A stretch of 64,000 bases of DNA from Auanema rhodensis (taxonomy: Eukaryota; Animalia; Nematoda). This document shows positions 18,828 through 53,322 of the stretch, one piece after another. Both the position numbers and the translations under genes were made by a program. The notes beneath the pieces were generated by a model. That model saw only the letters and a program-made list of their open reading frames with translations, had not been told where the DNA came from and searched no databases. The stretch covers positions 9,176,001-9,240,000 of the forward strand of contig OZ059897.1 of the NCBI GenBank assembly GCA_964057225.1, written 5' to 3'. Within the stretch, counting starts at the first letter, position 1. Each line of letters begins with the position of its first letter.

Positions 18828-18899
<72 letters not shown>

Positions 18900-21800
18900 A
18901 ATGAAAGGTTTGAAATGTATCCTACGAATGTTGCAGAATGATTGGCGTAAAAACAGGTTACTAACATCAAAAGCTTACAAACACAATAACAAACTACAAC
19001 GTTTGGTTGTCTTTAATTTTAGATTGAGAAACTGATTCAATAAAGATGATGTTATGTTTATGTGTTGTTGATGTTTTTGGCATTCATACTTTTCTATTTA
19101 AACAAAAAAAAAAGATTTTCAAAAAATTTGTAAAGAACTTCTGAAATGATGAGAACAAGAATATTGAACAGTAAAAGAGATTAGTGGCAGAAAAATGAAA
19201 AAAAGAGAAAAAAAAATTCATTTTTAGATTCAAGCATTGTTTGTTCGAAAAAACATGATGCCCTCTACTGATTTTCCACTGTTTCTCTCTTTTTCAAGCT
19301 CTTTCAAGCTCTAGTTAAATTTCTCTAGAAGAAACAATTATCAGCTGGGACTGTCTAAAGAACAACGATTCAGAATGAACAGGCAGAATTCATTGATATG
19401 CTTCTGAATTCTCCTCTCATTCAAAAATTCAATTTTTTCAGCTGAGATGTGCAGCAGAAATCACAGCCAAACCATTAATATCACCACAGACATGATATTG
19501 TGTATCGTGAAATTTGAAATTAGATAGATAACAATAAGCATGCTGTCTCGTAGAAACAAGACTAGGGGGGGGGGGGAGAGAAGTAAAATCGGGAGAAGTA
19601 GGGAGGGAGTGAGGGGGTCTTTGAAAACAGACAAGCTATTTTAAAAAAAGTTTTCTCCTTCTCTCAAAAAAAGCCTTTCCTCTGTTGCTTTCTCATATCA
19701 ATAGCCTAGCTTGTCACATAACTCATGAGAAGATTTGAAGAAAATTTTATATTCTAACTACTACAACTAAGCTATACTATGCTATGCTATGTGTATATGC
19801 CTAAATCTATACTTTTTTTCATTTTTTTAGAGATATTTTGACTTATTTTGTTTCATTTTTTGCTTTCTTTTCCGCTTTTTATTGTGTTTCCACGCATATT
19901 CTTCAACAATGTTGATTCAAACTTGACGTATTAGTATGTATTCCATCTCTTACTTCAACTTTTTTTTACTTTTATTATTTTGTTTTGCTTATAATATTTA
20001 CAAAATCTTTATTCGCACTTGATTGAACCCTTTTTCGGTTTTACTCTTATTTCTTCTATCGTTTTCAACTTTTATTCTAGCGCTCTATTACAAATCTTTC
20101 TCTTTTTTTTTTCTGATTTTCAATCTCATACTAAGTCTTCTTCCTTTTTTGCTTCACTTTTTCTAATTCCAGCTTATAAACTTGGTTAAAAGAATAAAGG
20201 AAAGAATAGATGTAGGGATCATGAATCCAAAAATTAAAGAATTTAAATGAAATTATGAGTAAATGTAATTCGATTATCGGGTAATAAACTACTATTGAAT
20301 ACTTAAGATAAAGGGTTTAAAGGCTAATTGCTGAAACCTCCAACTTTTTCTCATTTTGATCATCTTTAATAGGATCTCATAAAATAAAGATGTACTTTCT
20401 AAAGGATATATCACACAACGGATAATTCAAATAGAAGATTCAAAATTCTGATGATCATCTAAAGAATCAAAATCAGTAAGAGACCAAGGAACTGAATCTG
20501 ATAGCTTTGTATGAGGAGTTTCATGGATGTTATCAAATTGAAAATTCAAAATATTGAAAACGTTTTTCATCTTTTGGACTGCTACACCATTTGAATAACT
20601 AATTTTATACCATTCGCTTTCATTCAAATTGTTAAAATTTGTAAATGAGAGAAAGAAAACAATGATGTAATGTCATATAGACATAGAAGAAATATTATAA
20701 TTGGATAACGATGTATAACTTGCAAATTGGTCGAAACTAGTCGAGAAGTCAACGGCAACCAAACAGATATTGTCGTCCGAACGATTTTTGTCGAGGTAAT
20801 TAGTTGACTACATATGGTTCATCATCGTAACGACGACAGTAGATGGAATAGAGACTGTACAAAATGATAGGAGAATTGCTGAGAGAAGACAATAAGAGAA
20901 CGAATATAGCAAACAGAGGTCAACAGCCAGAGGCAATTGCATCTAAATACGTGCTACTGATCACTCTCTTCATTAGAGACAATTATCCAGCAAAAAAAAG
21001 AAGAGAAAACGAAGACGAATAGGTAAACTAAACTGAAAATGGATCTAACTGCAACTTATGCATAAAAAAAATTTTTTTTCAGATGCAACACTGGAAATAA
21101 AAAAAAAGGAAAAACTGAGCATAGATAAAAGCAATCCTAAAAATTTTGGATATATGTATATACTAGAGTTCTGGGCGTTGTCAGTTATGCGAAAAAAAAT
21201 TGTGAAAAAACAACAATAAATTGTCAAATACACAACATGATCCAAGTGAAGTATACCAGTAGACAGTTTGTAGGCAACGTTACATTATTTTCATGAGAAA
21301 AAAAAATATTTTAAAGAAACTAACCTGTCTCGGTCACTTCAGTTTGAGATTAAAATTCGTGGAATTTGGTGTACAGCTCTCTCTTACAATCTGAAGTATT
21401 AGATGATCAATATAGATATGAACGACGGCAGAATCATCAACATTGTTGCGAGACAAAAGCAAAAATATTAAATATATAACATGATCAAGTAATTATATAA
21501 ACTATAAGATTTTGTAAAAAAAAAATTAAGCTGGTTATAGCAAACGAACTTGATGGGTTCGCATAAATTGGATGGTGGAGGAGACATGATCAGGAATCAA
21601 ATACATAGATGGATGTATATAGATGTTGTGATATGATACATTTACGTGTATATATCATGGCATGATTGATAGGTACGATAGGTAATTCAGAAAATTGGCT
21701 TTATGTATGTATCAATTAATTCAAAACAATCGTTGAAATACATGAAAATCACTGGATTGTACATGACAAGCCAATTGAGATCAGTCATCTACACAGATGA

Positions 21801-25000: not shown

Positions 25001-26144
25001 ACAATATGTTGAGAATGAATTTTTTTTGTCGTAGGTTTGAGCTAACAAACAAGGGTGGGGCACATACAACATATGAATCTTTTGAGCCGATTGACACGAA
25101 ATGAGATATAAGTAACCAACAAGATCACTTTGCTTAGTCTTGAGGCTAAAATCAACAAAGAAGTGTGGCAAATAAGGTTTGCGGTGGAAAACATGGGATA
25201 AAACGGATTTTAAACATCACACCGATACTTACTGATGCAGAAGAAATATGAAAATTGGGAAGATCGTCTACCTAAATGGAATGAACAGGAGGAGATGAGG
25301 ATGAGGATGAGGTTGGTGTTCAAAGAGGTAGACATTCTGATGAGAAGGAAGGATAGTGATGAAGAGTGGCGGTCTGGACTAAAACCAGTTAATGAGAGAT
25401 GCCATACGGTCCAACTGGACAGGATATAAATGAAACTGTGCTGGTCAACCCTAACCAGGATGATGGTCTTAAGATAGGGAGTGACATCTGGTCCTGAAAC
25501 ATCAATCAGAAGGTGGGAAAATTATCGAAATCACGCTATGAGGCTTTAATGCAGATGTACCTTCACCGAGAACGAATGGAGGAAAGATGAACATAGTATT
25601 CAGAGAGAAATTGGGAGAATTAAAAGATTTAATAACGGAGTTTGATCTTTGAAATGGACAACAGTTTTTCATTGAGACGTGAACTTTCACACAGAGTTGT
25701 GCGAAATCAAAAGCCGGAGACTATACTAACATTAGAAAAACATTAGATAGATTGTTCAGCTTTTATGCAAAGATTTAACCTTAGAACATGATATTATTTG
25801 TATATTACAATGAAATAGTATCCATAGGTTATTCCATTTGTAATATATCTACCATGTATGTATGATATAATTTTGAAAATCTATATTTTCAGATGATGCT
25901 TATACAATTTCGAATGCTCAAACTTAAAACTCGTTGAAATCGATTCACCAAAAACCATCCACCTCCGATCATCCTTTCGGCAAAGAATATAAAGTTCGAA
26001 ACTCGTCTCGCCACCTTCTATTAAAACCAAACAACCATTTTTTCATTCTTTCATACATATGTACTTCGTAAGTAGATAGGTAGGTAGATAGGTAGGTAGG
26101 TAGGTAGGTGAAAGAACGGAGGAAAGGAGACAGAGAGAGAGAAG

Positions 26145-26236
<92 letters not shown>

Positions 26237-27057
26237 GGTAAAGGTAAGTATCTTATGAAAAAAACATCTCTATATATTTATCTTCTTTGGCTCAAGAATA
26301 ATTTTTTCAATTTTTATTCTGAAAGAACTTCAATTGTAGCAAATTTGACTGAAGAAAAGTGATGTTTACCAAAAGATACTATATTATACCATATTAGATA
26401 CTATATAGAAAAGGGATTAAGCATTTGTCATCATAAGCAACACTTTTTTTTCCAAAAAATATTTTTGAAGCAAATAATCTTCTTAATAGCAGTCAGTAAA
26501 TCAGAATAAGCATAGATATACATACATCTAGCTATATGGACAGCTTTGACAGACAATCTGTAAGATTTATGTGTACAGAAGCACCAATTCTCTCTGCGTT
26601 GCTAGATGGCTAGATAGTCCGGAAAGACAAGAAATACGTGAAGTTCGAATACGAAGAGTTCGATTTTTCGCCTTTTTGGTTACCTAAATAAAGAACGGAG
26701 AACGTTTAAACGTTTCGTAACTTTTGTATTTGATTGGATAAGGAAAATATTTTTTTCTCATTTTTCTTCTTTTTTTTTTTGCAAAAATTTGGTAAAATTG
26801 AAAGAATGAGGAACAACTGATACAAGTTGATTATAGCTAATCAGATGTTATAATATAGCATATTTAATATAAAATTAAGCTGATGATGATGAATCATAGA
26901 CTGAACATCATAAATGACCAGAAATCTGTAGAAAAATCCTCGTTTTTTCAATCTCTCTCTCTCTCTCTCTCCCTCTCTCTCTTTGATGTTCATGGAAGAG
27001 AGGAAAGAAAAAAGCATTTGTAGAGAAATATAGAATTATAAAAAATTATTGTCGAAA

Positions 27058-35971: not shown

Positions 35972-36048
<77 letters not shown>
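35972..36048. repeat. (AG)n microsatellite abutting the left direct repeat
   Basis: Pure AG run of about 77 bp ending where the duplicated segment begins. Confidence 0.95.
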
Positions 36049-36049
<1 letters not shown>

Positions 36050-36533
36050 GAGGATAACCATACGAAGGTAACAACAAAAGAACAAAACGTATGTCTGCGG
36101 TTCTACTATCGAAGATACCAAATTACGACGGAATCTCAAACGCAATTCCTTCTCGACAATGTTTATGATACTGAACCTTTTCTCTTCATTTTCTTCGTCT
36201 CACCATATATTCACATCCATCCTATCTGTTTTTCTCTCCACATACATACAATCACCACTTTCTGAGTTTACATGAATATCCCGAAGGTTATCTGACCTTG
36301 CAACCAGCGTAGGATTCATCTGAACGACGACGCATATTTTCCATCCACAAATTGACTACTGATCAATATCTATAGATCAGTGTTTGTTTTTTAATTTTCA
36401 TATAAGATTTAAAGATATTTATTTTGTAAGATGTTAACTTATTTTATTCATTTGCTATGTATTTTACAAATAAATTATATATAGACTGACATGTAAGCTA
36501 AATGAAAGAAGCAGTATAATACTTACTTACAAT
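36047..36533. repeat. Left copy of the ~487-bp direct repeat flanking the Maverick/protease insert
   Basis: gacgaggataaccatacg...acttacttacaat recurs at 43396-43884. The only difference I see is gatatttattttgtaag vs gatatttatatgttgtaag. Confidence 0.95.
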
Positions 36534-36535
36534 TT

Positions 36536-37000
36536 TTTGATGTTCAAATTCAACCTATTATTTGTACTGCTGACGCTCCAGTTCAATAGTTTAGATTACC
36601 GAAATTACACAAATGTAATTATCATAGACAATTATCGCCTCAATCAGAAGTAGTAAGGTATGAAGTCTTCAAACCCAACATCATTGAATACTCAAGTACG
36701 GCTAAATTGTATAAGAAATTAATTAGTGATGTAACAATGTTTACTGATTTTTCTGGATATGAACACTTACTAGAAAAGGAATTGAATCATCGTTACTTAA
36801 GTCTTGCAGAATGTAGAGAATGGAATGCAAATAAGAAGTGTGAATATAGAACACTTGTTAATTCTGGAGGTATGTCAGATTTAAAGAATCCTAGAACCTC
36901 TGGATTGTGGAGTACAAACAATAAAGTCGAAGTAGATTATTCAAATAGATTTTCGAGTTTATTCTCAGCAAAAAGATATTACAAAGAAAATCAATTTTAA
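36536..37000 (+). pseudogene. Class III (herpes gB-like) fusogen N-terminal fragment, MFUS/Tas-env-like
   Basis: One frame reads QPIICTADAPVQ*FRLPKLHKC...EVVRYEVFKPNIIEYSSTAKLYKKLISDVTMFTDFSGYEHLLEKELNHRYLSLAECREWNANKKCEYRTLV...GLWSTNNKVEVDY. This follows the P-x-x-C...WRLP...C...YRPN...FTNFxG...VSxEEC...KC...TxN pattern I recall for nematode gB-like envelope proteins. Internal TAG at 36587-36589 (probably from TGG); truncated. Confidence 0.7.
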
Positions 37001-37005
37001 TTAAC

Positions 37006-37369
37006 ATGGAGAAATTAATTGAAACTTGTGATCAATACCTCTTTCTTCATAAATCTTATATTTATTTAGAAGCATCATTGACTAAATTAGACTTTAGTGC
37101 ATTAACTGATACAGATGAAGTCTCTCTGACTAACAATAGTCCTATCTTCTTATTTGATAGAACAACTTATAGTATAGATAGTATGCAAGTTGAGAAATGT
37201 CATTGATCCTGGAAGAGCATCGCTGATGAAAGGACTTCTCACTTATAGTTCAACAATGAATAAACAAAATACTTTTGGTTGATTTTTAGAAACTAAAAAC
37301 ATCCCATTAATTCATATTTTCAGATTTGTTGAATGTTACAATCGAATAATTTATGGAAGGAAACATCTC
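37006..37369 (+). pseudogene. Maverick major capsid protein fragment
   Basis: DQYLFLHKSYIYLEASLTKLD...DEVSLTNNSPIFLFDRTTYSIDSMQVE / +1 frameshift / NVIDPGRASLMKGLLTYS...FG*FL... IPLIHIFRFVECYNRIIYGRKH. Matches Polinton MCP motifs (SYLYIEG, L-x-NN, PGxATxMKGLL, IPLxHIFGFxEDYxKIIYGxKH). Carries a frameshift, a stop and an internal deletion. Confidence 0.85.
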
Positions 37370-37524
37370 AATGCTGTAAAGTTCGATAATTGTGGGCTTG
37401 AAGGAAATTTATGTTAAACTCGATAGACCAGATGTCACAATAAAGGCAAGTTTCAATGCTTAATTTTGAGTCAAACATTATTGAAGTCAATGATAATAGA
37501 GTTAAGGTTGTTAGTGCTTAATTC

Positions 37525-37660
37525 TTAAAATTTCAAATCTTCAGCAGGAATCCAAGAATTAAACTTATCCGGATATCCATAACCTTTGTCAAAAATAGCT
37601 GTAGATTTAGTTATTCTAACAGTGTCCCGTACTTTGAATTTTTGTAAAACCAGAGGTTTT
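37525..37660 (-). pseudogene. Maverick integrase C-terminal fragment (SH3-like/chromodomain tail)
   Basis: KFKVRDTVRITKSTAIFDKGY fused by internal deletion to GYPDKFNSWIPAEDL, matching the KFKVGDxVRISK...FxKGY and GYPxxFNSWI motifs of Maverick integrases. Confidence 0.85.
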
Positions 37661-37875
37661 AGAAATGTTTGATTTTTCTTCAATGAGACCATCAAGAATA
37701 GGCGCTTTTTTAAAATACTCAAACTAACATATTGATGATCAGTCAATAAATCATAACATTTATAATAGGAACGGGGCAAATTACACATAAAACAAATTTC
37801 AGCATATCTTTTAGAATTTTTGAATATATTAAATCAGTTTTTCTCCGAAATTAATGAAATTTTTTGCTTATAGCA

Positions 37876-39165
37876 ATGCAACAACTATCTGTGAAAGGAA
37901 TATTTGAACTTACAAATACAGAAGAGAAGTCTCCTAAATTTTTAGGAGAAAAAGGAATTTTACCGAAAGAAAAAGTAAATTCATTCAAACTTCTTAATAT
38001 TAAATTTTTTATTTCCTTTTCTCTGAAGAATTGCTCTCAATTAGGTCTTCTATGTTCTTAAAAACTAATTTAAAGCGATGGAGATGTAGCTCTAAAAGAT
38101 GCCAAAAGGAAACAGGAATGTTAGAAGAAACATGGCTTCAAAATGCTAAGCTACCTTTATCTAAAATTATTCAATTTATTTACTGCTGGGCCGCTGAATA
38201 TAATTCCGTTAAAATTGCAAAAGAGCAACTAAACATCAGTTGCAAAACTTATGTTGATTGGACTAGCATGATCCAAGAAATATGTACTTTTTAAAAAAAC
38301 TCTTTAAATGTCCAGTTGAAATAGGTGGACCTAGTAAAACAGTTGAAATCGATGATAGTGTATTTTATCATCGAAAATATGATAGAGGAAGGATGCGAAA
38401 CGAAAACTGGGAATCGTTTAGCTTGCTAGGATATTCTATATGCAAATGCTGTTGCGCTTCCACGTGCACGATAATTTCAAAACATACATAGTTTAAAATT
38501 TTATCAATAATTCGAAAAATGAAATGAAATAACATTTTACCTAAAAAAAAAGATGTGCTGTGCTGAAAACATGAGGTTCATGATGGGTGGAAGAGCTAGA
38601 TTTCGTTGTAGAATTTAAAATCGATTAAATGTTTATATTTTGATGTTTAAGTATGTTTCTATACATCAGGGGGGGACACCCCGAAATTTCTTATAAAATC
38701 TAAACTTTTTCATCTTCTTATCTTATTCAGATAACTTTAATTATTCTGTTAACATTTTGAGCCAACACATTAGCATAAGGATGCACCACAGAGGAGGGTG
38801 GCAACTAATAAACAAGCGCCCATGCTTCATGTATATTATTTCTAATAGAACTGCCAAAATTCTCAACTCATGTGTGATAGCGTCTGTTGAAGCTGGTTTA
38901 ACCATTGTAAATGTTGGAAAGTGTTTTTGTATTTAAATTATTTTAACCATGCTTATACTCATATATCTGTCTAACCATAATGACAACTTTGTGAACCCCG
39001 TAAATGGAGCTTGCACAAACTGAAATGAAGGATTGTGGAGTCGAAAAAAAATTAGTAAAAACAGAAATGGCTGCCAAACTAGTAGTTCAGAATCGCACAT
39101 AGTTGACTTTGTAAATAGAAGACGATTAAAAAAGCCAATATTTTCGAACAATTTTTGAATGATAC
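37876..39165 (+). mobile_element. Merlin/IS1016 (ISXO2-like) DDE transposase relic in two pieces
   Basis: N-part 37876-38410: FLGEKGILPK...WRCSSKRCQKE...TWLQNAKLPLSKIIQFIYCWA...TYVDW...IGGPSKTVEIDDSVFYHRKYDRGR. C-part 38820-39165: CFMYIISNRTAKIL...YTHISV/NHNDNFVNPVNGACTN*NEGLWS...HIVDFVNRRR. Frameshifts and stops present; no TIR pair identified. Confidence 0.85.
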
Positions 39166-39170
39166 ACATA

Positions 39171-39864
39171 CAGTCCTGTGCAATGAAGGTTGCACATCCC
39201 TATGTTAGAGGCTCCAGAAAACCCCTTCAAACTACAAAAACAAATTTTTTTTTAATTTCAAAAATTTTGCGAGTTTATATAGTATATATTCAGTCAAAAT
39301 ATATGTTAATATAACTAAAACTGATTTCAATATTATTTTCTAAATTTATAAAGAAAAATAGTGTTTTTTGACTATTTTGAATAATTCATCTTAATATAAC
39401 AAAATTTGAGATTAGGAAAGAAGTTAATTTATTAGAAATATCTTTAAATCATTCTGAGCACAGAGCTCGATCAATAACCAAGTTTTTCCTATGGCATAGC
39501 TTCAAACAAGTAAGCTTCATCATCTGAATCTTACTGAATATCTATGAAGAGAACTTGGTTGACGTACAACCAAATTCTCCCGTTTAAAAGAAAAATTGAC
39601 GTTTAGTGTGTTCCTAACATTCTATTAAAAGATTATATCTGAAGTTTTTATGAAACTCATGAAATTCATGAAAGAAGACTTCAAGCAGTTTATGAAAATT
39701 TCGGAGACTTCAGAAAATACTTTTAAACATGATTTTTAAAACTTTAAAGATTTTTTCTGAATTCATTATCGTTTTTTAACATCCAAAATATATTTTTTCT
39801 GATTTTTTGTAGTTTGTCCGAAAAGGAGTTCTTGTGGGTGTGCAACCTTCACCGCTTAGGACCG
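39171..39864 (+). mobile_element. ~694-bp non-autonomous Tc1/mariner-type element (MITE), copy 1
   Basis: TA|CAGTCCTGTGCAATGAAGGTTGCACATCCC at the left end, degenerate right TIR GGGTGTGCAACCTTCACCGCTTAGGACCG|CA, no coding capacity. 39171-39818 is the reverse complement of 40277-40924. Confidence 0.85.
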
Positions 39865-39869
39865 CATGT

Positions 39870-40190
39870 GAATTTACTACTGATTATAATGATGTAAACG
39901 CTAAAAGCCTTGATGAGCAAACACCTTCCACGTCTTTTCTTTCGAAGTTCTGTTAAATCTTAGTACTACTGAAGCTTTCATATTAGAATAAGTCGAAAAA
40001 TGATTAATTCTTAATGATTTAAAAAAAACTTGCATATAAGAATTGTAGTATTCCTTACCATTATCATTCTGCATCTTCTGTAGTTTTCTTTTGCTCTGGG
40101 AAAACATTGAAGAAAGAGCATCTTCACCACAATTACTCTCAAGAGGTACTACCTCAGCATACTTTGAACAACAATCAATAAGTTCAAATT
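39870..40190 (-). pseudogene. Maverick rve integrase catalytic-core fragment
   Basis: IDCCSKYAEVVPLESNCG...KLQKMQNDNGKEYYN...INHFSTYSNMKASVVLRFNRTSKEKTWK corresponds to IDxFSKYAW...QxDxGKEF...KASxVERFNRTLK of Maverick integrases. The third catalytic residue reads L instead of E. Confidence 0.9.
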
Positions 40191-40223
40191 TAAAAAAATA
40201 TAAATATAAAAAAAAAAAATATA

Positions 40224-40924
40224 CAGTCCTGTGCGATGAAGGTTGCACACCCACTAGAATCCCTTATACCTTCTCAGACAAACTACAAAAAATCAGAAAA
40301 AATATATTTTGGATGTTAAAAAACGATAATGAATTCAGAAAAAATCTTTAAAGTTTTAAAAATCATGTTTAAAAGTATTTTCTGAAGTCTCCGAAATTTT
40401 CATAAACTGCTTGAAGTCTTCTTTCATGAATTTCATGAGTTTCATAAAAACTTCAGATATAATCTTTTAATAGAATGTTAGGAACACACTAAACGTCAAT
40501 TTTTCTTTTAAACGGGAGAATTTGGTTGTACGTCAACCAAGTTCTCTTCATAGATATTCAGTAAGATTCAGATGATGAAGCTTACTTGTTTGAAGCTATG
40601 CCATAGGAAAAACTTGGTTATTGATCGAGCTCTGTGCTCAGAATGATTTAAAGATATTTCTAATAAATTAACTTCTTTCCTAATCTCAAATTTTGTTATA
40701 TTAAGATGAATTATTCAAAATAGTCAAAAAACACTATTTTTCTTTATAAATTTAGAAAATAATATTGAAATCAGTTTTAGTTATATTAACATATATTTTG
40801 ACTGAATATATACTATATAAACTCGCAAAATTTTTGAAATTAAAAAAAAATTTGTTTTTGTAGTTTGAAGGGGTTTTCTGGAGCCTCTAACATAGGGATG
40901 TGCAACCTTCATTGCACAGGACTG
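40224..40924 (-). mobile_element. 701-bp Tc1/mariner-type MITE, copy 2, inserted in the Maverick integrase
   Basis: TA|CAGTCCTGTGCGATGAAGGTTGCACACCC ... GGGATGTGCAACCTTCATTGCACAGGACTG|TA: ~30-bp TIRs, TA on both sides and CAGT termini. Confidence 0.92.
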
Positions 40925-41060
40925 TATATCTAAAACCTTCATTCTCACCAACATAAGGAATCATTTCTACTAAATCAGATGGCCATTGTTCATCTATTGC
41001 ATTGACGTAGACTCTTTGGTTCGGGTAATTCTTGCGAACTGGTTTGTGTAACCTACTTTT
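40925..41060 (-). pseudogene. Maverick integrase N-terminal fragment
   Basis: LHKPVRKNYPNQRVYVNAIDEQWPSDLVEMIPYVGENEGFRY matches the LHKPVRxxF...V...IDxQWQADLVEM...NxGYRY segment and is collinear with the core across MITE copy 2. Confidence 0.9.
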
Positions 41061-41365
41061 CTCTTCCTTACTGTGGCCGAACACAATCACACATGCTCCA
41101 GTTGAACTAGGCGCACGCGACGCGACACGCAAACGCGTTTGAATTCTTCCACTACCTTTGGTTATTAGAAAAGAGACTTCATTTTATTCTGCAGTTCGCG
41201 TCGATTTCGTGATTTCCTATCCGTGATTATCATTGTTTCTTTTTCCGTAACTTTGAGTTAAAAATGCTAACAACTTTTCGTAGTTTGCCTTTTCTTCGAA
41301 TAATTTGAATATGTTAACAGGATGCACGTTGCAATTAATTCTTATTTTTCACATTTCTTTTCAGA

Positions 41366-42775
41366 ATGACTAGTACCATTCATATTAAAATGATAGACAA
41401 GGAGGTGGAAGTAGAATTGTCGAGCAATGTTTTGACTCAAAACACCATCAAAAGCCAGTTTCTTCTTCCTTGGAATGCAGTTGTGTCATTGAGCTATGAA
41501 ATTCACGGCCGTCGGAAAGGATGCCCGTAAGTCATATTTTGAATTTTTTCTGATTTATTCCAATGAATAAAGAATGAACGAAGCTGGAACGGCATTTTTA
41601 CTTCCGGACAATCTCCAAGAGATGCACTTTTTTGTTGACTCCAACAAAATGCCTTCTCGACCAGCTTCTTCACTAAGTAAAGAAGGTTTGTATGATATAC
41701 GCTTGAATTTATTATCTTTCATTAGCAACATTAATTTGTGTGTTTGGTACAAAAGGGATTTTTACTTAAAATATTCATTTTAGCACAATTTTCTGACTAC
41801 GATCGGGATCGACCTTTGTCGCCTTACGTTTTTGATGGTATTATATTATATTTTGAATAGCTTAACAATTTATTGCTGGTTTTTAGAGAAACTAGCGGAC
41901 GGACTTCGCAAACTTCTCTTCTATGTTCCTCGAGCACAAATAGCTCTACAAGATCCTAAGAAAACTTTTGCTAAACCTATAGAAGATTGTCTCATTGAAG
42001 GTGGTTGCGTATCCCCAATTTCATCGAGAGCTGCTGTGACATTTGCTCACAAATCGCATAAAATTCTCCGTGAGTACGAAGAAGGACAGAATGATGAAAT
42101 CAATCAGCACAGTCTTGTGGAAATACGAAATTGTCAGGATCATACTATTCGACATATGATGAAGGTATCTTAAAAGAATTTTTTTATAATTAATTCAATA
42201 TATTGTAGGTCGTTGTAGTCGACGCTCATCACGACTTTGTGATTCTTCACTCAATGGACGGAAGCGAGATTTTCAAAGACTATCCGTCTGCTAAGCGTTC
42301 CCCTAAGAATTTCGAATGGTTTCTTGGGTTTGGTCTGAGTCATGAAACTCAAGCTGGGCAGCAAATTACTCATCGAACTGGTCGGATCTGTTCTGACACC
42401 GTGGACTATAAAGGACGTTATTTGGCCAGTTCTTCGATTGATGGGGGTGATTCCGGAGGCCCATGCTACTCTGCTGATCGCTCTCTTATCGGTATTATGG
42501 TATCCTCAAGAACAACAGAACCAAGGCTCACAAAGGAATATGATTGTGACATCACTGAAGAAGAAATCATAGACGCTTCTGCTAATCCAGCTGATACGTG
42601 GATTACTCCCGGCAATTTATTCATGGAAGCTTATAAAGTAATTTATCGTAAAACTCATAAATTCACATATAGTATTTTTTAGATTTATTTGATAAAGCAT
42701 GGTATTCTACAAGCTCGTCGAGAGAGAGAGTTAGGGGAACCAAAATCAAAGCGTCGAGCGGTTGCAACATTGTAA
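41366..42775 (+). CDS. Intact WOSP-like intracellular serine protease (N-terminal ubiquitin/TDP-43-NTD-like domain + trypsin-fold protease), 375 aa, 6 exons; probable Maverick cargo
   Basis: ttttcag|A ATG at 41366. Exons 41366-41526, 41573-41685, 41784-41837, 41887-42164, 42209-42637 and 42683-42775 are all GT-AG and sum to 1128 nt = 375 aa + TAA. Catalytic triad motifs AAVTFAH, HHDFVIL, GGDSGGP. No signal peptide; basic tail PKSKRR. Confidence 0.88.
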
Positions 42776-43329
42776 CGCTCATCACGACTTTGTGATTCTT
42801 CACTCAATGGACGGAAGCGAGATTTTCAAAGACTATCCGTCTGCTAAGCGTTCCCCTAAGAATTTCGAATGGTTTCTTGGGTTTGGTCTGAGTCATGAAA
42901 CTCAAGCTGGGCAGCAAATTACTCATCGAACTGGTCGGATCTGTTCTGACACCGTGGACTATAGAGGACGTTATTTGGCCAGTTCTTCGATTGATGGGGG
43001 TGATTCCGGAGGCCCATGCTACTCTGCTGATCGCTCTCTTATCGGTATTATGGTATCCTCAAGAACAACAGAACCAAGGCTCACAAAGGAATATGATTGT
43101 GACATCATTGAAGAAGAAATCATAGACGCTTCTGCTAATCCAGCTGATACGTGGATTACTCCCGGCAATTTATTCATGGAAGCTTATAAAGTAATTTATC
43201 GTAAAACTCATAAATTCACATATAGTATTTTTTAGATTTATTTGATAAAGCATGGTATTCTACAAGCTCGTCGAGAGAGAGAGTTAGGGGAACCAAAATC
43301 AAAGCGTCGAGCGGTTGCAACATTGTAAC
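42222..43329 (+). repeat. 553-bp tandem duplication of the protease 3' half (exon 5 to the stop codon)
   Basis: 42222-42776 is repeated at 42775-43329 with AC microhomology at the junction. Two visible substitutions (YKG>YRG, DIT>DII). The second copy lacks the His motif and an upstream acceptor. Confidence 0.95.
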
Positions 43330-43395
43330 CATTTAAGAATTGTTTCCGATTTTTTAATAATTTGTTTGTAAAATTTTTAATTTATTGTGTTAAAG

Positions 43396-43884
43396 GACGA
43401 GGATAACCATACGAAGGTAACAACAAAAGAACAAAACGTATGTCTGCGGTTCTACTATCGAAGATACCAAATTACGACGGAATCTCAAACGCAATTCCTT
43501 CTCGACAATGTTTATGATACTGAACCTTTTCTCTTCATTTTCTTCGTCTCACCATATATTCACATCCATCCTATCTGTTTTTCTCTCCACATACATACAA
43601 TCACCACTTTCTGAGTTTACATGAATATCCCGAAGGTTATCTGACCTTGCAACCAGCGTAGGATTCATCTGAACGACGACGCATATTTTCCATCCACAAA
43701 TTGACTACTGATCAATATCTATAGATCAGTGTTTGTTTTTTAATTTTCATATAAGATTTAAAGATATTTATATGTTGTAAGATGTTAACTTATTTTATTC
43801 ATTTGCTATGTATTTTACAAATAAATTATATATAGACTGACATGTAAGCTAAATGAAAGAAGCAGTATAATACTTACTTACAAT
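43396..43884. repeat. Right copy of the ~489-bp direct repeat
   Basis: Near-identical to 36047-36533 in the same orientation. Confidence 0.95.
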
Positions 43885-44129: not shown

Positions 44130-47100
44130 TCAAATTATTTCAGCAAACCATTCAGCAAGTTGCTTATCACATGCTGGGTCTATGCTAACTATATGTAAAT
44201 TGGGATAAATGAGAAAATAGAATAAACAGAATATGATGAAGCCAAAGAAGAAAAGCATCTGAAATTTTTGGAATAAAAATAATATTGTTTGTAGATTGGT
44301 GTAGAGCATACCTGCGAAATCCATTGAAATCGGTGCATTGATCTCTTTGTGAAACGGAATTCCATTCCAGCTAACAATCGTTCCACTGAAATTAATAGAA
44401 GAAATAATATTTTTTCTTTTTTAATCAGATACATTTTCCTTTATATTGTTCTTCTGATACTGAATCGGCTTCATCTCCAATTGAAACTGTTTGATATTCG
44501 CATTTGTGTTTTCTATAAGCATTTCATTTATATTTTTTTCATTATAAAATATATTAATCAGACAAAAAGAAAATGGAATGCAACCCATATTCTTATAAAA
44601 TTATTTAAAAATTAAAATTTTGTTTTCAAATCTTTCACGTGATATTCACGTGAACATAAATATAAACTTACTTTCCGTTACGTAGAATAACATTGTTATT
44701 CCCACGTGCTGCTGGAACTATAAGTCCATTTACTGTACGCGTATGTAACATCATTTGATTAACAAGATTGTGTGGTGATTCACTTAAATTTAAATTTATG
44801 AAAAAAAAAGAAAAAAATAACATTGCAACTTACTCTGCAACCTTAATGCGTTGTCTCATATATTTCACGAATGCTAATTTAATTAGTGATAAAAAAACAA
44901 TCATGAAGCATACTCCTGAAAGAAAATGAAAATATTTTTTAACTCCAAAATGAAAGAAAAATATATGATATAGTTAGTTACCTAAATAGATATCCATAGC
45001 TTTGATATAGCTTACTCTCGGCATCATCTCATTGTATGAGAATATCAAAAAGGTTATTGCGAGAATTATTGAAATCATATCCTAATTAATAATGCTCAAA
45101 AATGTTTTAAGCTTGATTAACAAACTTGAAACTCTGTTTCACTTTCCATCCATAATGATACCCATGATGTTATAACGACAGCTGTTGATGGTATAATTAG
45201 TTGCAAGAAACAAAATCCTGATGAACGTGAAAAAACAAAACATACATATAGTCGAGAATAATTTCCTAAAAAGATGTAAAAGGAGTATAAGCACTTAGAC
45301 AACACAAACGATTGTGAACTAACCCGTAGCATAAACTTCTGTTTGACTTGTTACATAAGCTTCTTTGATTGTGAAGTCAGGTAATCGTATTTTCATCAGT
45401 TTCAGTGCACTTCTAGATCCCGTTGACCATTTATACATGACTTGATCAGCAGTATATCCATCTGAATAACATCAAAAGTTTATTTAAATTTGATTATTCT
45501 CAATTATATACGTACAACTTTCGATTCCAAGTTTACATAGTTGTTTATCAAACGGAAATAAAGTTAAATCCATGGCTAAAATTAGAAATTTCATGACAAT
45601 TCTTATGATAATGATGCTTAGAAACTTAAAACATAATTAAAACTTACTACATTCACAAATTAATGAAATTCTACGACTATATAACAATTGACCATTTTCT
45701 TCCAATCTTAATTATATTTATTATTAACTTTGATTGATTTCAGATTAACCTTAATAAAGATCTATGTGATATACTATTCTTTTGTGGATTCTTAGATGCT
45801 ATAGCATTTGGTACAAATGTATCCGGAAACCAAAGAAAGTTTGTATAACTCTCATGTAATGCTAATTTCGTTTTATTTTTGAATAAAGTTTTATCAAATT
45901 GAAGACGTGAATCAAGCCATGATTCACGATAAAACAGCTCAAGTGCATAATCCTAAATTTGTCAGATTGATTAGAGTATCTACTGTCTACGAAACAGTAC
46001 CATAGTAACTTCTGAAACAGCTCGAATATTGCTTACAACTACAGAAACTTCAACAGTTACAGCTTCTGAAACATACTATGTACTCACATAAACATAGATC
46101 ATTGACTCAATAATCATTTTTAAACTTACGTCCATTATTGTTTTCAGGACATTGTCTATGATCATACTTGATTCGACGAAGGAATTGTAGAAAATCACGT
46201 GTTTCACTGCAATTATAAAGTTTTATATAATAATTTTAACTTTACAAAAGAAAAAGCTTATTGTTGTTATTATTAGTTAAAATCAAAGAATTATACTTCA
46301 TTCTATAATTCTGAAATTAATAGCTAAATAGCTTTCATGCAAACGCTTCATGCAATTATTTATTTAGATGTTACACTACACGCTTTTCTAGAACTGTCAG
46401 GCTAACATACCCAAATGTTCTGACGTCCCTGAAATTGATGAATATCGTTTAGATTTTACCTTTATTTCATTAACACCGAACGATATGTTAAAAAACATTC
46501 ATATACATTATACTTTAGAAGGAAATCAACTAGACTTACTTAACTAGAGTCGTCTTTTCAAAGTTGAAAATCAAGTTCTTTAAAAATTAAAGAAGTCGAA
46601 CTCTTTTTACTTTTTGTTCCACTTTTTCTTCAATATCGTTTTATGCTTTCAATTCATTTCCTCAATCTCTATGATCCCAACATCAACAAACTTAAACTCG
46701 ACTGTCCAGTCATACTTCGCCCTGCCATCTGGTTTGCTCTAGCTCTCACGTCGCGTTCCTGATGAATGGACGACTTATTCTCATCAATTTAGAATGGATA
46801 GTGAATGAAAACAAGCTCGACGACGTCAAAAGTTTGAATGTGACAATGTCCCGTTCGATCATGAACATCAAACTAATCCAGTCATTGTTCACTCAAATTC
46901 AGCAGCTCAAAGTACTGCCTTGTAACGATTCTTAAGTTTTGTTAGCTCATTTGTCAATGATAAATCGCTCTCTTTAAGATACAATAGAATTGAAATAGCC
47001 TTCTAATAATACATATAAGTATGTATGTATATACATCAATTAGTTTAAGTTTGTTACCATTTAAAGCAATTTTTATGTTACTTTTTATATTTTAGTTTTT

Positions 47101-52066: not shown

Positions 52067-53322
52067 CTACCAGCTATACATTCGGTTAATTTGACGGAAA
52101 AATATCTTATTATGTGGTATTAAACGTTCTCTTAATCTTTCTAAAGTACTACTAGATATCTGACGATGTGTTCGTCCTTTACTATTGCCTAAACATCTCA
52201 ATGAACTGGTAGGTGTCTTAAGAAAACAGAAAAATCCTTTTTTCTCATTGAAAACCAGCTGATCAATGGATACTGATGCTGGTAAACTTAAAAATGTTTC
52301 AACTTGGCGAATCTGTAAAAGGATGATGAAAATGATTATTCAGCATTATTCTTCAATGCATACCTCGTTCAATGGATTTCCACGAAATACATCACCATTC
52401 ACCAGCAATATCTGATTTGAAGGAAAATATTTCAACCAATTATCCAAATGCATATGATATATTGAGTTTCTGATTGGTTTGTAAGATAAATTCAATTCTG
52501 TTGTTCCAGGAATGAATACTTCTTTTTCAAATATCGGTAAACTTTTATTTGTTTTCATCTTATTATAATAAACCTGAAAAAAGTTTTAATTAGCATATTA
52601 TATAAAAAAAATTTAACTACGTCATATCCGTTATTTCAAATTTCAAGTAAATTTCAAAACTTTTTTGCTTACGTGAAATACGATTGTAATTTCACTATTT
52701 GTTCTCATCTCTTTCATTTTAGATTAAGATTCTATTTAACATTACCTGGGTAAAATCACTAACAGTTCTTTGAACTGGATCACGGATAATCAAAATTATT
52801 TTCATGTTGGGGTTAAGCTCAAATACTCGTTTAGGAGCTAGCGGACTCGTAAAATATCCCGGAGTTTTTTCTATTACAATCTGTAAAATAGAATTTTAAT
52901 AAACTATATAAATAAAAATCAATTTTTACTTGTTTGTCATTAGTTATAGGCATACATTTCTTGTACCAATCCAAGCCTTTTTCATAATTTAAATCAAAGA
53001 AATGAGTTTCTTTTACAACGGTTTGAATATTTGGATGAAGACTTAAAGCATCTAAGAGAGCTCTTGTGCCACCTTTCCGCACGCCAATGATCAAAGCTGA
53101 CGGAAGTTGGCCAGAAATATTCCTAAACAATCAAAATTTGGGTTCAAAAATGAATAAAAGCAAACAAAACCTATATGGATATACACGTCGACCTATATAA
53201 GCTTCTTGTATTACATCATTTCGAAGATTTTTATATGAAATAATGAATATAGAAACTTGAATGGCCACAAATAGAGCTAATGCTACACAGGCTGTTAATA
53301 AAGTTTCTCGGTTACAGATCAT
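52067..53322 (-). CDS. hst-3.1: Heparan sulfate glucosamine 3-O-sulfotransferase (HS3ST1/5-like)
   Basis: Five exons. N-terminal TM anchor; 5'-PSB motif LPSALIIGVRKGGTRALL; ETHFFD; IEKTPGYF; 3'-PB motif IIRDPVQRTVSDFTQ; KKGFFC...CLGNSKGRTH; stop TAG at 52069-52067. A possible 35-bp 5'-UTR exon lies at 57912-57878. Confidence 0.92.

Follow-up and report, generated by a model that had tools for sequence, protein, structure and literature searches.

The window that we analysed is a 64,000-nucleotide stretch of Auanema rhodensis DNA, and all positions are counted from its first letter. At 36534-43395 lies a block that holds a whole protease gene together with the broken remnants of an integrase and a fusogen-like gene. 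The block is bracketed exactly by two copies of a direct duplication, which we call R. From left to right, the features are as follows.

35973-36046, no strand: (GA)n microsatellite, abutting the left R copy
36047-36533, no strand: left copy of R, 487 nt
36537-37203, plus strand: putative remnant of a gB-like Maverick fusogen at the left edge of the block, N-terminal quarter only, broken
37204-37527, no strand: unassigned spacer without a family match, separating the fusogen stump from the integrase 3' end
37528-41183, minus strand: candidate rve-type integrase remnant, broken, with three nested transposon insertions inside
41184-41365: short divergent intergenic stretch, from the integrase start to the protease ATG
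41366-42775, plus strand: intact WASP/WOSP gene, 372 codons plus TAA
41366-41526, 41573-41676, 41784-41837, 41887-42164, 42209-42637, and 42683-42775, plus strand: exons of this gene
42775-43327, plus strand: copy 2 of a tandem duplication of 553 bp, with copy 1 at 42222-42774
43328-43395, no strand: AT-rich tail after the gene, 68 nt, with a poly(A)-signal-like hexamer and no terminal inverted repeat (TIR)
43396-43884, no strand: right copy of R, 489 nt
44977-45952, minus strand: exons of a Cys-loop ligand-gated ion channel (exp-1-like), with the 3' end facing R

The protease gene has six exons, all GT-AG, and a reading frame without stops. Its five introns are 44-107 nt long, and TTTCAG immediately precedes the ATG. 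An earlier note on this DNA, made from the sequence alone, had described an unbroken multi-exon gene for a serine protease with a ubiquitin-like (Ubl) module; this holds up, except that the frame has 372 codons instead of 375. When the protein is aligned with its relatives, the His column falls in exon 4 and the Asp and Ser columns (the latter within GDSGGP) fall in exon 5.

The best match of the window protease is CRE_26055 from Caenorhabditis remanei (73% identity over exon 5, E = 2e-65). CRE_26055 is listed as C.REM-WASP-4 in Data S1 of Widen et al. (bioRxiv 10.1101/2022.07.12.499685, Science 2023; hereafter, Widen et al.), and by this match the window gene is a member of the WASP/WOSP family, as had been proposed. 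Only 20 relatives were found among the 1.84 billion representatives searched, and every named one is from a nematode. All six exons align with nematode proteins and together cover the relatives over their full length, with the catalytic columns conserved. Exons 1-2 are 47-73% identical to the N-termini of relatives from C. japonica, C. bovis, C. auriculariae, and M. belari. The closest protease domains (69-73% identity) belong to CRE_26055 and to the group of C. briggsae CBG25657 and P. pacificus WASP-1; the N-terminal exons of these genes do not match the Ubl exons of the window gene. The positions of introns 3 and 4 are common to the window gene and these relatives, and intron 4 can still be aligned.

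For exon 5, the comparison with CRE_26055 gives a dN/dS of 0.12, so the protease gene has evolved under purifying selection. No relative in the databases searched is more than 76% identical to the window protease. Near-identical relatives, which would point to recent transfer, were not found, and recent horizontal movement is therefore unsupported. The relatives in C. remanei and C. briggsae sit in neighborhoods that are unrelated to this one (aquaporin/TRAPP and MFS transporter/SNAPC1), so neither of these close named relatives is an orthologue by position. Nor did R or the non-coding parts of the block match the C. remanei or C. briggsae loci.

Within the window protein, Pfam's Trypsin_2 matches exon 5 below its cut-off, and a profile search aligns the Asp and Ser with those of Deg1, marginally (E = 0.5). 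We found no match to a PDZ domain, and the protein ends 30 residues past the protease domain. An AlphaFold2 (AF2) model of the C. bovis relative (and not of the window protein itself) matches HtrA/Deg proteases only, with a probability of 1.0 and target-normalised TM scores of 0.6-0.76; a small alpha/beta module is also present in this model. With the fold taken from the modelled relative, that is, at the level of the family, the window protease is an S1C HtrA-like domain without a PDZ. The whole protein is predicted to consist of an N-terminal ubiquitin-like module followed by this serine protease domain, which retains its His, Asp, and Ser.

The neighbors of the protease gene within the block are both dead, while the protease gene is whole. 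The fusogen stump opens with a signal-peptide-like start, and no frame is open from end to end. Its match to Pfam's Glycoprot_B_PH1 (E = 0.003) scores 17.6 bits, below the cut-off of 27. The stump has one homologue, a protein of 151 amino acids from H. bacteriophora (59% identity over 73 columns), and H. bacteriophora carries a largely complete Maverick (Widen et al.). A sequence search of the PDB with the fusogen piece was empty even at E = 10, and an AF2 model of this piece, built with its single homologue, was unusable (pLDDT of 34.9). The fusogen fragment of the earlier note is thus retained as a stump at the left edge whose gB PH1 match is sub-threshold. For the integrase, the core piece matches Pfam's rve (E = 7e-4) and NCBIfam's IS481-type DDE family (E = 9e-5). 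Both matches are below the cut-offs because the core piece is a fragment. The core piece also found nothing in the PDB by sequence, even at E = 10, and the N- and C-terminal pieces of the integrase were assigned by eye. The nested transposons comprise two copies of a TIR-bounded element of ~0.7 kb and a weak IS1595/Merlin-like piece. About 180-230 bp separate the integrase start from the protease ATG, and the two genes are divergently oriented. Both the nested elements and the broken integrase near the start of the protease gene were correctly noted before.

Among the 24,736 models scanned, gB PH1 and rve were the top sub-threshold families for precisely the pieces in which they had been predicted. 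We infer from these matches that the fusogen and integrase pieces come from a Maverick. In nematode Mavericks, the cargo lies beside the integrase and divergent from it, is GC-richer, and contains introns (Widen et al.). In the block, an intron-bearing cargo region adjoins the integrase and has a GC content of 0.38-0.42, compared with about 0.29-0.31. The position and the GC content of the window gene are consistent with those of Maverick cargo.

Other Maverick hallmarks were not found. The earlier note had reported a fragment of a Polinton major capsid protein; when all open stretches of at least 41 codons in 36.5-41.2 kb were compared with Pfam, and eight of them with NCBIfam as well, none matched a capsid protein family. 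There is little room for a capsid gene, and the spacer at 37204-37527 is one of only two places for a capsid fragment. Searches of the block's open stretches against distant-family libraries gave no match to a protein-primed PolB, packaging ATPase, maturation protease, or major or minor capsid protein. Mavericks are expected to end in TIRs of 100-1500 bp with a 5-8-bp target site duplication (PMC10748475). At the ends of the block, we found no inverted match, just seeds at the level of chance, and in place of a 5-8-bp target site duplication there is the direct duplication of 487/489 bp.

The copies of R differ by two mismatches and two one-base gaps, and there are no further copies elsewhere in the 64-kb window. 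The ends of R are not TG..CA, and no short target duplication is present. Given that the borders are direct duplications, the present boundaries of the insert were not made by a Maverick integrase. R has diverged by less than 1%, yet the Maverick genes are heavily decayed, which means either that the duplication arose long after the insertion or that its copies are being homogenised. The 553-bp tandem duplication repeats most of exon 5, intron 5, and exon 6, 3' of the protease stop codon. Its copies differ at two positions, and there is a 2-nt microhomology at the junction. Neither the R bracket nor this tandem duplication appears in the earlier note.

Outside the block, the channel gene on the right is identified at the level of the family (Pfam Neur_chan_LBD, E = 3e-8; Neur_chan_memb, E = 5e-7), in agreement with the exp-1-like gene that had been proposed. 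The rhgf-2-like left neighbor did not gain such support: about 20 stretches there gave no match to RhoGEF, PH, or PDZ domains. Scanning 34-46 kb for Rfam families and tRNAs gave no hits.

Overall, the block is likely to be what remains of a nematode Maverick/Polinton at its cargo end, with a cargo gene that is now an ordinary host gene and borders that arose by repair or duplication. Three parts would be retained in this stump: the cargo gene, the divergent integrase, and the initial quarter of the gB-like fusogen. At least one large internal deletion would lie between the integrase and the fusogen stump, and the polymerase, ATPase, maturation protease, and capsid genes would have been lost, along with both TIRs. 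The insertion may be old and vertically shared. The cargo gene, which has outlived its vector as the earlier note had supposed, would most likely be a selectively maintained host gene for a putative intracellular protease. Its Ubl module would tune the abundance of the protease, by analogy with MSFT-1, for which such tuning has been reported. The borders would be a 487-bp direct duplication of flanking DNA that arose via break repair or a local duplication event.

This configuration is expected: among 235 family members, about 20% have Maverick genes within 6 kb, and nematode Mavericks are mostly pseudogenised (Widen et al.). Two close parallels are C. auriculariae WASP-5 and C. parvicauda WASP-1, which lie inside pseudogenised Mavericks. 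Like the block, they have an intron-bearing Ubl and HtrA-like cargo gene adjoining the integrase, a GC-richer cargo region, and decayed Maverick genes. Unlike them, the block keeps just a stump of ~4 kb without TIRs, and it has the 487-bp direct-duplication bracket and a tandemly duplicated 3' end of the gene.

The other 80% of family members are not linked to Mavericks (Widen et al.), and the window gene could instead be a host-born WOSP gene amid unrelated transposon debris, with an integrase from another DDE or retro-type element and a gB match that is due to chance. That the rve and gB matches are under the Pfam cut-offs, and that a capsid, a polymerase, and TIRs were all not found in the block, would fit such an origin. 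We nevertheless consider it unlikely: both predicted families were the top match for the predicted pieces, the fusogen piece has a specific homologue in Maverick-bearing H. bacteriophora, and the divergent integrase-cargo layout and the GC step agree with the published architecture. Also, no reverse transcriptase, gag, or other transposase domains were seen.

The arrangement of the two R copies around the block might also be an artefact of assembly, in which a mis-join of haplotypes or repeats falsely doubled 487 bp around a heterozygous insertion. The R copies are nearly identical, as alleles would be, and the bracket has no known signature of transposition. On the other hand, the window contains no runs of N, the sequence runs on into host genes on both sides, and the independent, young 553-bp duplication inside the block makes local duplication plausible as biology. 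We regard an artefact as improbable.

There is also a small chance that the block and one R, together a unit of 7.3 kb, were already dead when they arrived, or arrived anew, at this site, either because a circular or concatemeric copy was re-integrated or because break repair copied the unit. A comparable circle is the Maverick scaffold with a single TIR in C. bovis (Widen et al.), where the 3' end of the cargo gene meets the opposite end of the element at one copy of the repeat. Read as a circle, the window unit would likewise have R between the 3' end of the cargo and the 5' end of the fusogen. Unlike that scaffold, the window unit is integrated, decayed, and 7.3 kb long, and we found no relation of R to a TIR. 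If this did happen, then a live WOSP gene moved on within or between genomes without working Maverick machinery, and the contrast between R, diverged by under 1%, and the heavily decayed viral genes would give a date for a second, non-viral move.

The earlier note had also raised selfish behavior, and the protease could in principle be the toxin of an active toxin-antidote (gene-drive-like) element in the style of msft-1. It is in the same family as MSFT-1, its catalytic triad is intact, and it persists though its vector has decayed. Like msft-1/tlpr-1 of C. briggsae, it would be a Maverick-delivered gene that outlived its Maverick; msft-1 differs from the window gene in having an antidote linked to it and in its capture by a MULE whose TIRs are 870 bp long. 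We found no linked antidote candidate, no match to a MULE transposase, and no long inverted repeats flanking the gene. Furthermore, most family members are not toxins (Widen et al.), and the purifying selection is just as compatible with an ordinary host function, so we view a toxin as very unlikely. Finally, direct terminal repeats of ~0.5 kb around a 6.9-kb unit with an integrase and an envelope-like gene recall an LTR retroelement with a gB-like env and R as its LTRs, but we rejected this reading as scarcely credible because the fusogen and integrase are on opposite strands, five introns interrupt the protease gene, the repeats lack both TG..CA ends and a short target duplication, and reverse transcriptase, RNase H, and gag gave no match.

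The initial observation is therefore partly confirmed and mostly ordinary, in that the pattern has already been published for many nematodes; the unusual part is that a 487-bp direct duplication, in place of Maverick ends, encloses the entire block. If the block is a Maverick stump, as we think likely, then it documents another cargo gene that was kept whole under purifying selection after the breakdown of its virus-like carrier. The keeping of cargo after the carrier has decayed would be the step that turns horizontally delivered genes into host genes. The R borders and the young tandem duplication at the 3' end of the gene suggest that ordinary break repair keeps reshaping such stumps, which would matter when the ages of insertions or the routes of transfer are inferred from the ends of elements.

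The protease gene is a member of the WASP family of nematode serine proteases, which appears as WOSP in the printed version of Widen et al., because its top match, CRE_26055 from C. remanei, carries the name C.REM-WASP-4 in that paper's Data S1; the wosp-type identity proposed in the earlier note is therefore correct. The gene lies in a block whose ends coincide with the inner edges of two copies of a direct duplication, R (487/489 bp). The main features are as follows.

Features of the block and its surroundings (coordinates in the window).
35973-36046: (GA)n tract, the exact left boundary of R
36047-36533: left copy of R, abutting the (GA)n tract
36534-43395: the block
36537-37203, + strand: fusogen remnant; Pfam Glycoprot_B_PH1 (below cut-off) and one H. 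bacteriophora homologue
37528-41183, - strand: integrase remnant; rve and IS481-type DDE matches on its core piece
41366-41526, + strand: protease exon 1, GT..AG model
41573-41676, + strand: protease exon 2, GT..AG model
41784-41837, + strand: protease exon 3, GT..AG model
41887-42164, + strand: protease exon 4, GT..AG model
42209-42637, + strand: protease exon 5, GT..AG model
42683-42775, + strand: protease exon 6, GT..AG model, with the TAA stop
42222-42774 and 42775-43327, + strand: 553-bp tandem duplication, two differences, 2-nt junction microhomology
43396-43884: right copy of R, running into the 3' side of the channel gene
Right of the right R copy, - strand, 3' side facing R: Cys-loop ligand-gated channel gene (Neur_chan_LBD, E = 3e-8; Neur_chan_memb, E = 5e-7)

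We searched and aligned the protease model exon by exon. The introns are 44–107 nt long, every border is GT..AG, and the split codons give no stop. The six-exon, unbroken gene that the earlier note described is thus present, with 372 codons plus TAA, close to the 375 claimed. The exon products cover the relatives in order from N- to C-terminus. With exon 5 as the query, only 20 proteins matched among 1.84 billion representatives, and the named ones are all from nematodes (C. remanei, C. japonica, C. briggsae, P. pacificus, C. bovis, C. auriculariae, C. nigoni, Mesorhabditis, and Acrobeloides); CRE_26055 was 73% identical (E = 2e-65). In the family alignment, the gene retains the catalytic His column in exon 4 and the Asp and GDSGGP Ser columns in exon 5, consistent with the full H/D/S triad claimed for it. 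At the serine column, a C. japonica relative (P0002) lacks the serine that the window gene and most relatives have, so some family members may be inactive. The family profile matched HtrA/Deg proteases marginally in sequence (E = 0.5–0.9). For the C. bovis relative (not the window protein), an AlphaFold2 model (pLDDT 70.9) matched HtrA/Deg structures only (Deg9, DegS, and HTRA1; probability 1.0, target-normalised TM 0.6–0.76).

Comparison of exon 5 with C. remanei (dN 0.18, dS about 1.5, which is near saturation, and dN/dS 0.12) indicates that the gene has been under long-term purifying selection. Introns 3 and 4 have positions common to the window gene and the C. remanei and C. briggsae genes. 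These introns (41838-41886 and 42165-42208) still align with introns of C. remanei (L001:6485-6845, in the CRE_26055 locus) and C. briggsae (L002:6822-6868, in the CBG25657 locus). For intron 4, 40 of 44 bases are identical to C. briggsae, which was matched by none of 500 composition-kept shuffles. In this small sample, short introns remain alignable while synonymous sites in exon 5 approach saturation; low-complexity bias, or constraint acting on short introns, may explain this.

The two domains differ in their nearest relatives. For the protease exons (41887-42775), these are C. remanei, C. briggsae, and P. pacificus, three species at much the same distance in that domain. For the Ubl exons (41366-41676), the matches were proteins from C. 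japonica, C. bovis, C. auriculariae, and M. belari, and the C. remanei, C. briggsae, and P. pacificus genes gave no match. This is the discordance usual for the family, and Widen et al. describe modularity of a similar kind.

The 553-bp tandem duplication, which the earlier note did not mention, is young and contains most of exon 5, intron 5, and exon 6. Because the first copy retains its own TAA, the encoded protein stays as it was; the second copy falls past this stop and probably extends the 3' UTR with an intron-bearing copy.

Both putative viral genes are broken, as had been claimed. The fusogen remnant opens with a signal-peptide-like stretch at most 6 bases from the block's left border. 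The top Pfam family for its main open stretch was Glycoprot_B_PH1 (E = 0.003; 17.6 bits versus a cut-off of 27), so its gB-like identity is suggested by a sub-threshold match. Its sole homologue is a 151-residue fragment (59% over 73 columns) from H. bacteriophora, which carries a largely complete Maverick (Widen et al.); there is at least one in-frame stop within the homologous stretch. No frame is open throughout (nine stops in the best frame), and three consecutive open stretches each use a different frame, which implies two or more frame changes. No more than about 220 codons are left, while intact fusogens have at least 730 residues (PMC10748475), so about three quarters of the gene would have been deleted.

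The core piece of the integrase matched rve (E = 7e-4) and an IS481-type DDE model (E = 9e-5), below cut-offs; the N- and C-terminal pieces were assigned by eye only. Three nested insertions interrupt the remnant, which also contains at least four stops and one or more frame changes. The longest stretch that is open in it spans 120 codons, whereas an intact integrase has 360 residues or more (PMC10748475). Two of the insertions are opposite-orientation copies (10 mismatches and 3 indels in 707 columns) of a non-autonomous element of ~0.7 kb bounded by TIRs of about 35 bp. These copies are 98–99% alike and may belong to a young MITE family of this genome. The third insertion is a fragment that weakly matches an IS1595/Merlin-type transposase (E = 0.03).

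Family-profile searches of the block's open stretches found no polymerase, ATPase, maturation protease, or minor or major capsid protein, so the Polinton major capsid fragment reported earlier has no family match here. The only DNA still unassigned, 37204-37527 (about 0.3 kb) and a few hundred bases within the integrase span, compares with at least 1.2 kb for an intact capsid gene. DNA derived from the element comes to about 4 kb, versus 13–25 kb for a whole Polinton (PMC10748475). In nematode Mavericks, a GC-richer cargo region of 2–5 kb, with intron-bearing genes such as wasp-2, lies between one TIR and the integrase (Widen et al.). The block shares this layout: the protease gene and the integrase are divergent and about 180 bp apart, and GC is 0.38–0.42 in the cargo gene versus about 0.29–0.31 across most other parts of the block (the integrase N-terminal piece, at 0.42, is an exception). 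However, the TIR expected past the cargo's 3' end is missing. Just a 68-nt AT-rich tail separates the protease gene region from R, and the two block ends share no inverted repeat.

The duplication R was absent from the earlier note. Its copies differ by two mismatches and two one-base gaps in 489 columns, and the window contains no further copies. Because Maverick integration produces TIRs and a 5–8-bp target duplication (PMC10748475), the integrase did not make the present borders. The R copies are under 1% divergent while the viral genes are heavily decayed, so either R was duplicated after the original insertion or its copies are undergoing homogenisation. The borders could have arisen in several ways: through break repair in which R was copied, perhaps with stalling at the (GA)n tract; through a templated insertion; through a circular or concatemeric copy that re-integrated over more than one unit length, for which the single-TIR circular C. 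bovis scaffold of Widen et al. offers a comparison; or through mis-joining of haplotypes in the assembly.

The window as a whole is nematode-like in character: it is eukaryotic DNA, rich in AT (GC 0.315), and its GT-AG introns are short and end in TTTCAG acceptors. Long (GA)n/(TC)n microsatellites are frequent throughout (e.g., 18833-18900 and 26140-26240), and sulfotransferase exons lie further right (52349-53130, - strand; Sulfotransfer_1, E = 1e-5). Domain searches of the left-hand stretches gave no support for the "rhgf-2-like" left neighbour.

Neither protein collection contains a relative with over 76% identity, and thus neither a recent donor nor a recent recipient is apparent. The window has no antidote-like gene or MULE TIRs. 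We inspected two relatives' loci with 6-kb flanks, both marked as non-Maverick-associated by Widen et al. CRE_26055 has aquaporin and TRAPP genes on one side and a DNApol_Exo-bearing gene on the other; CBG25657, on chromosome II, lies alongside an MFS transporter and SNAPC1. As neither adjoins a ligand-gated channel, they are not positional orthologues of the window gene. Outside the protease gene range, blastn of the window against the C. remanei locus found no match. The gene in that locus with the Pfam DNApol_Exo match (L001:9483-11234) could be a Maverick polymerase remnant, despite the paper's label.

Overall, the window holds a real, correctly named WOSP gene beside a probable Maverick stump. 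About 20% of the 235 WASP/WOSP family members are Maverick-linked and nematode Mavericks are mostly pseudogenised (Widen et al.), so a WOSP gene with a dead Maverick is the expected configuration. The repair-type borders of the block are unusual, and are a modest extra beyond it.
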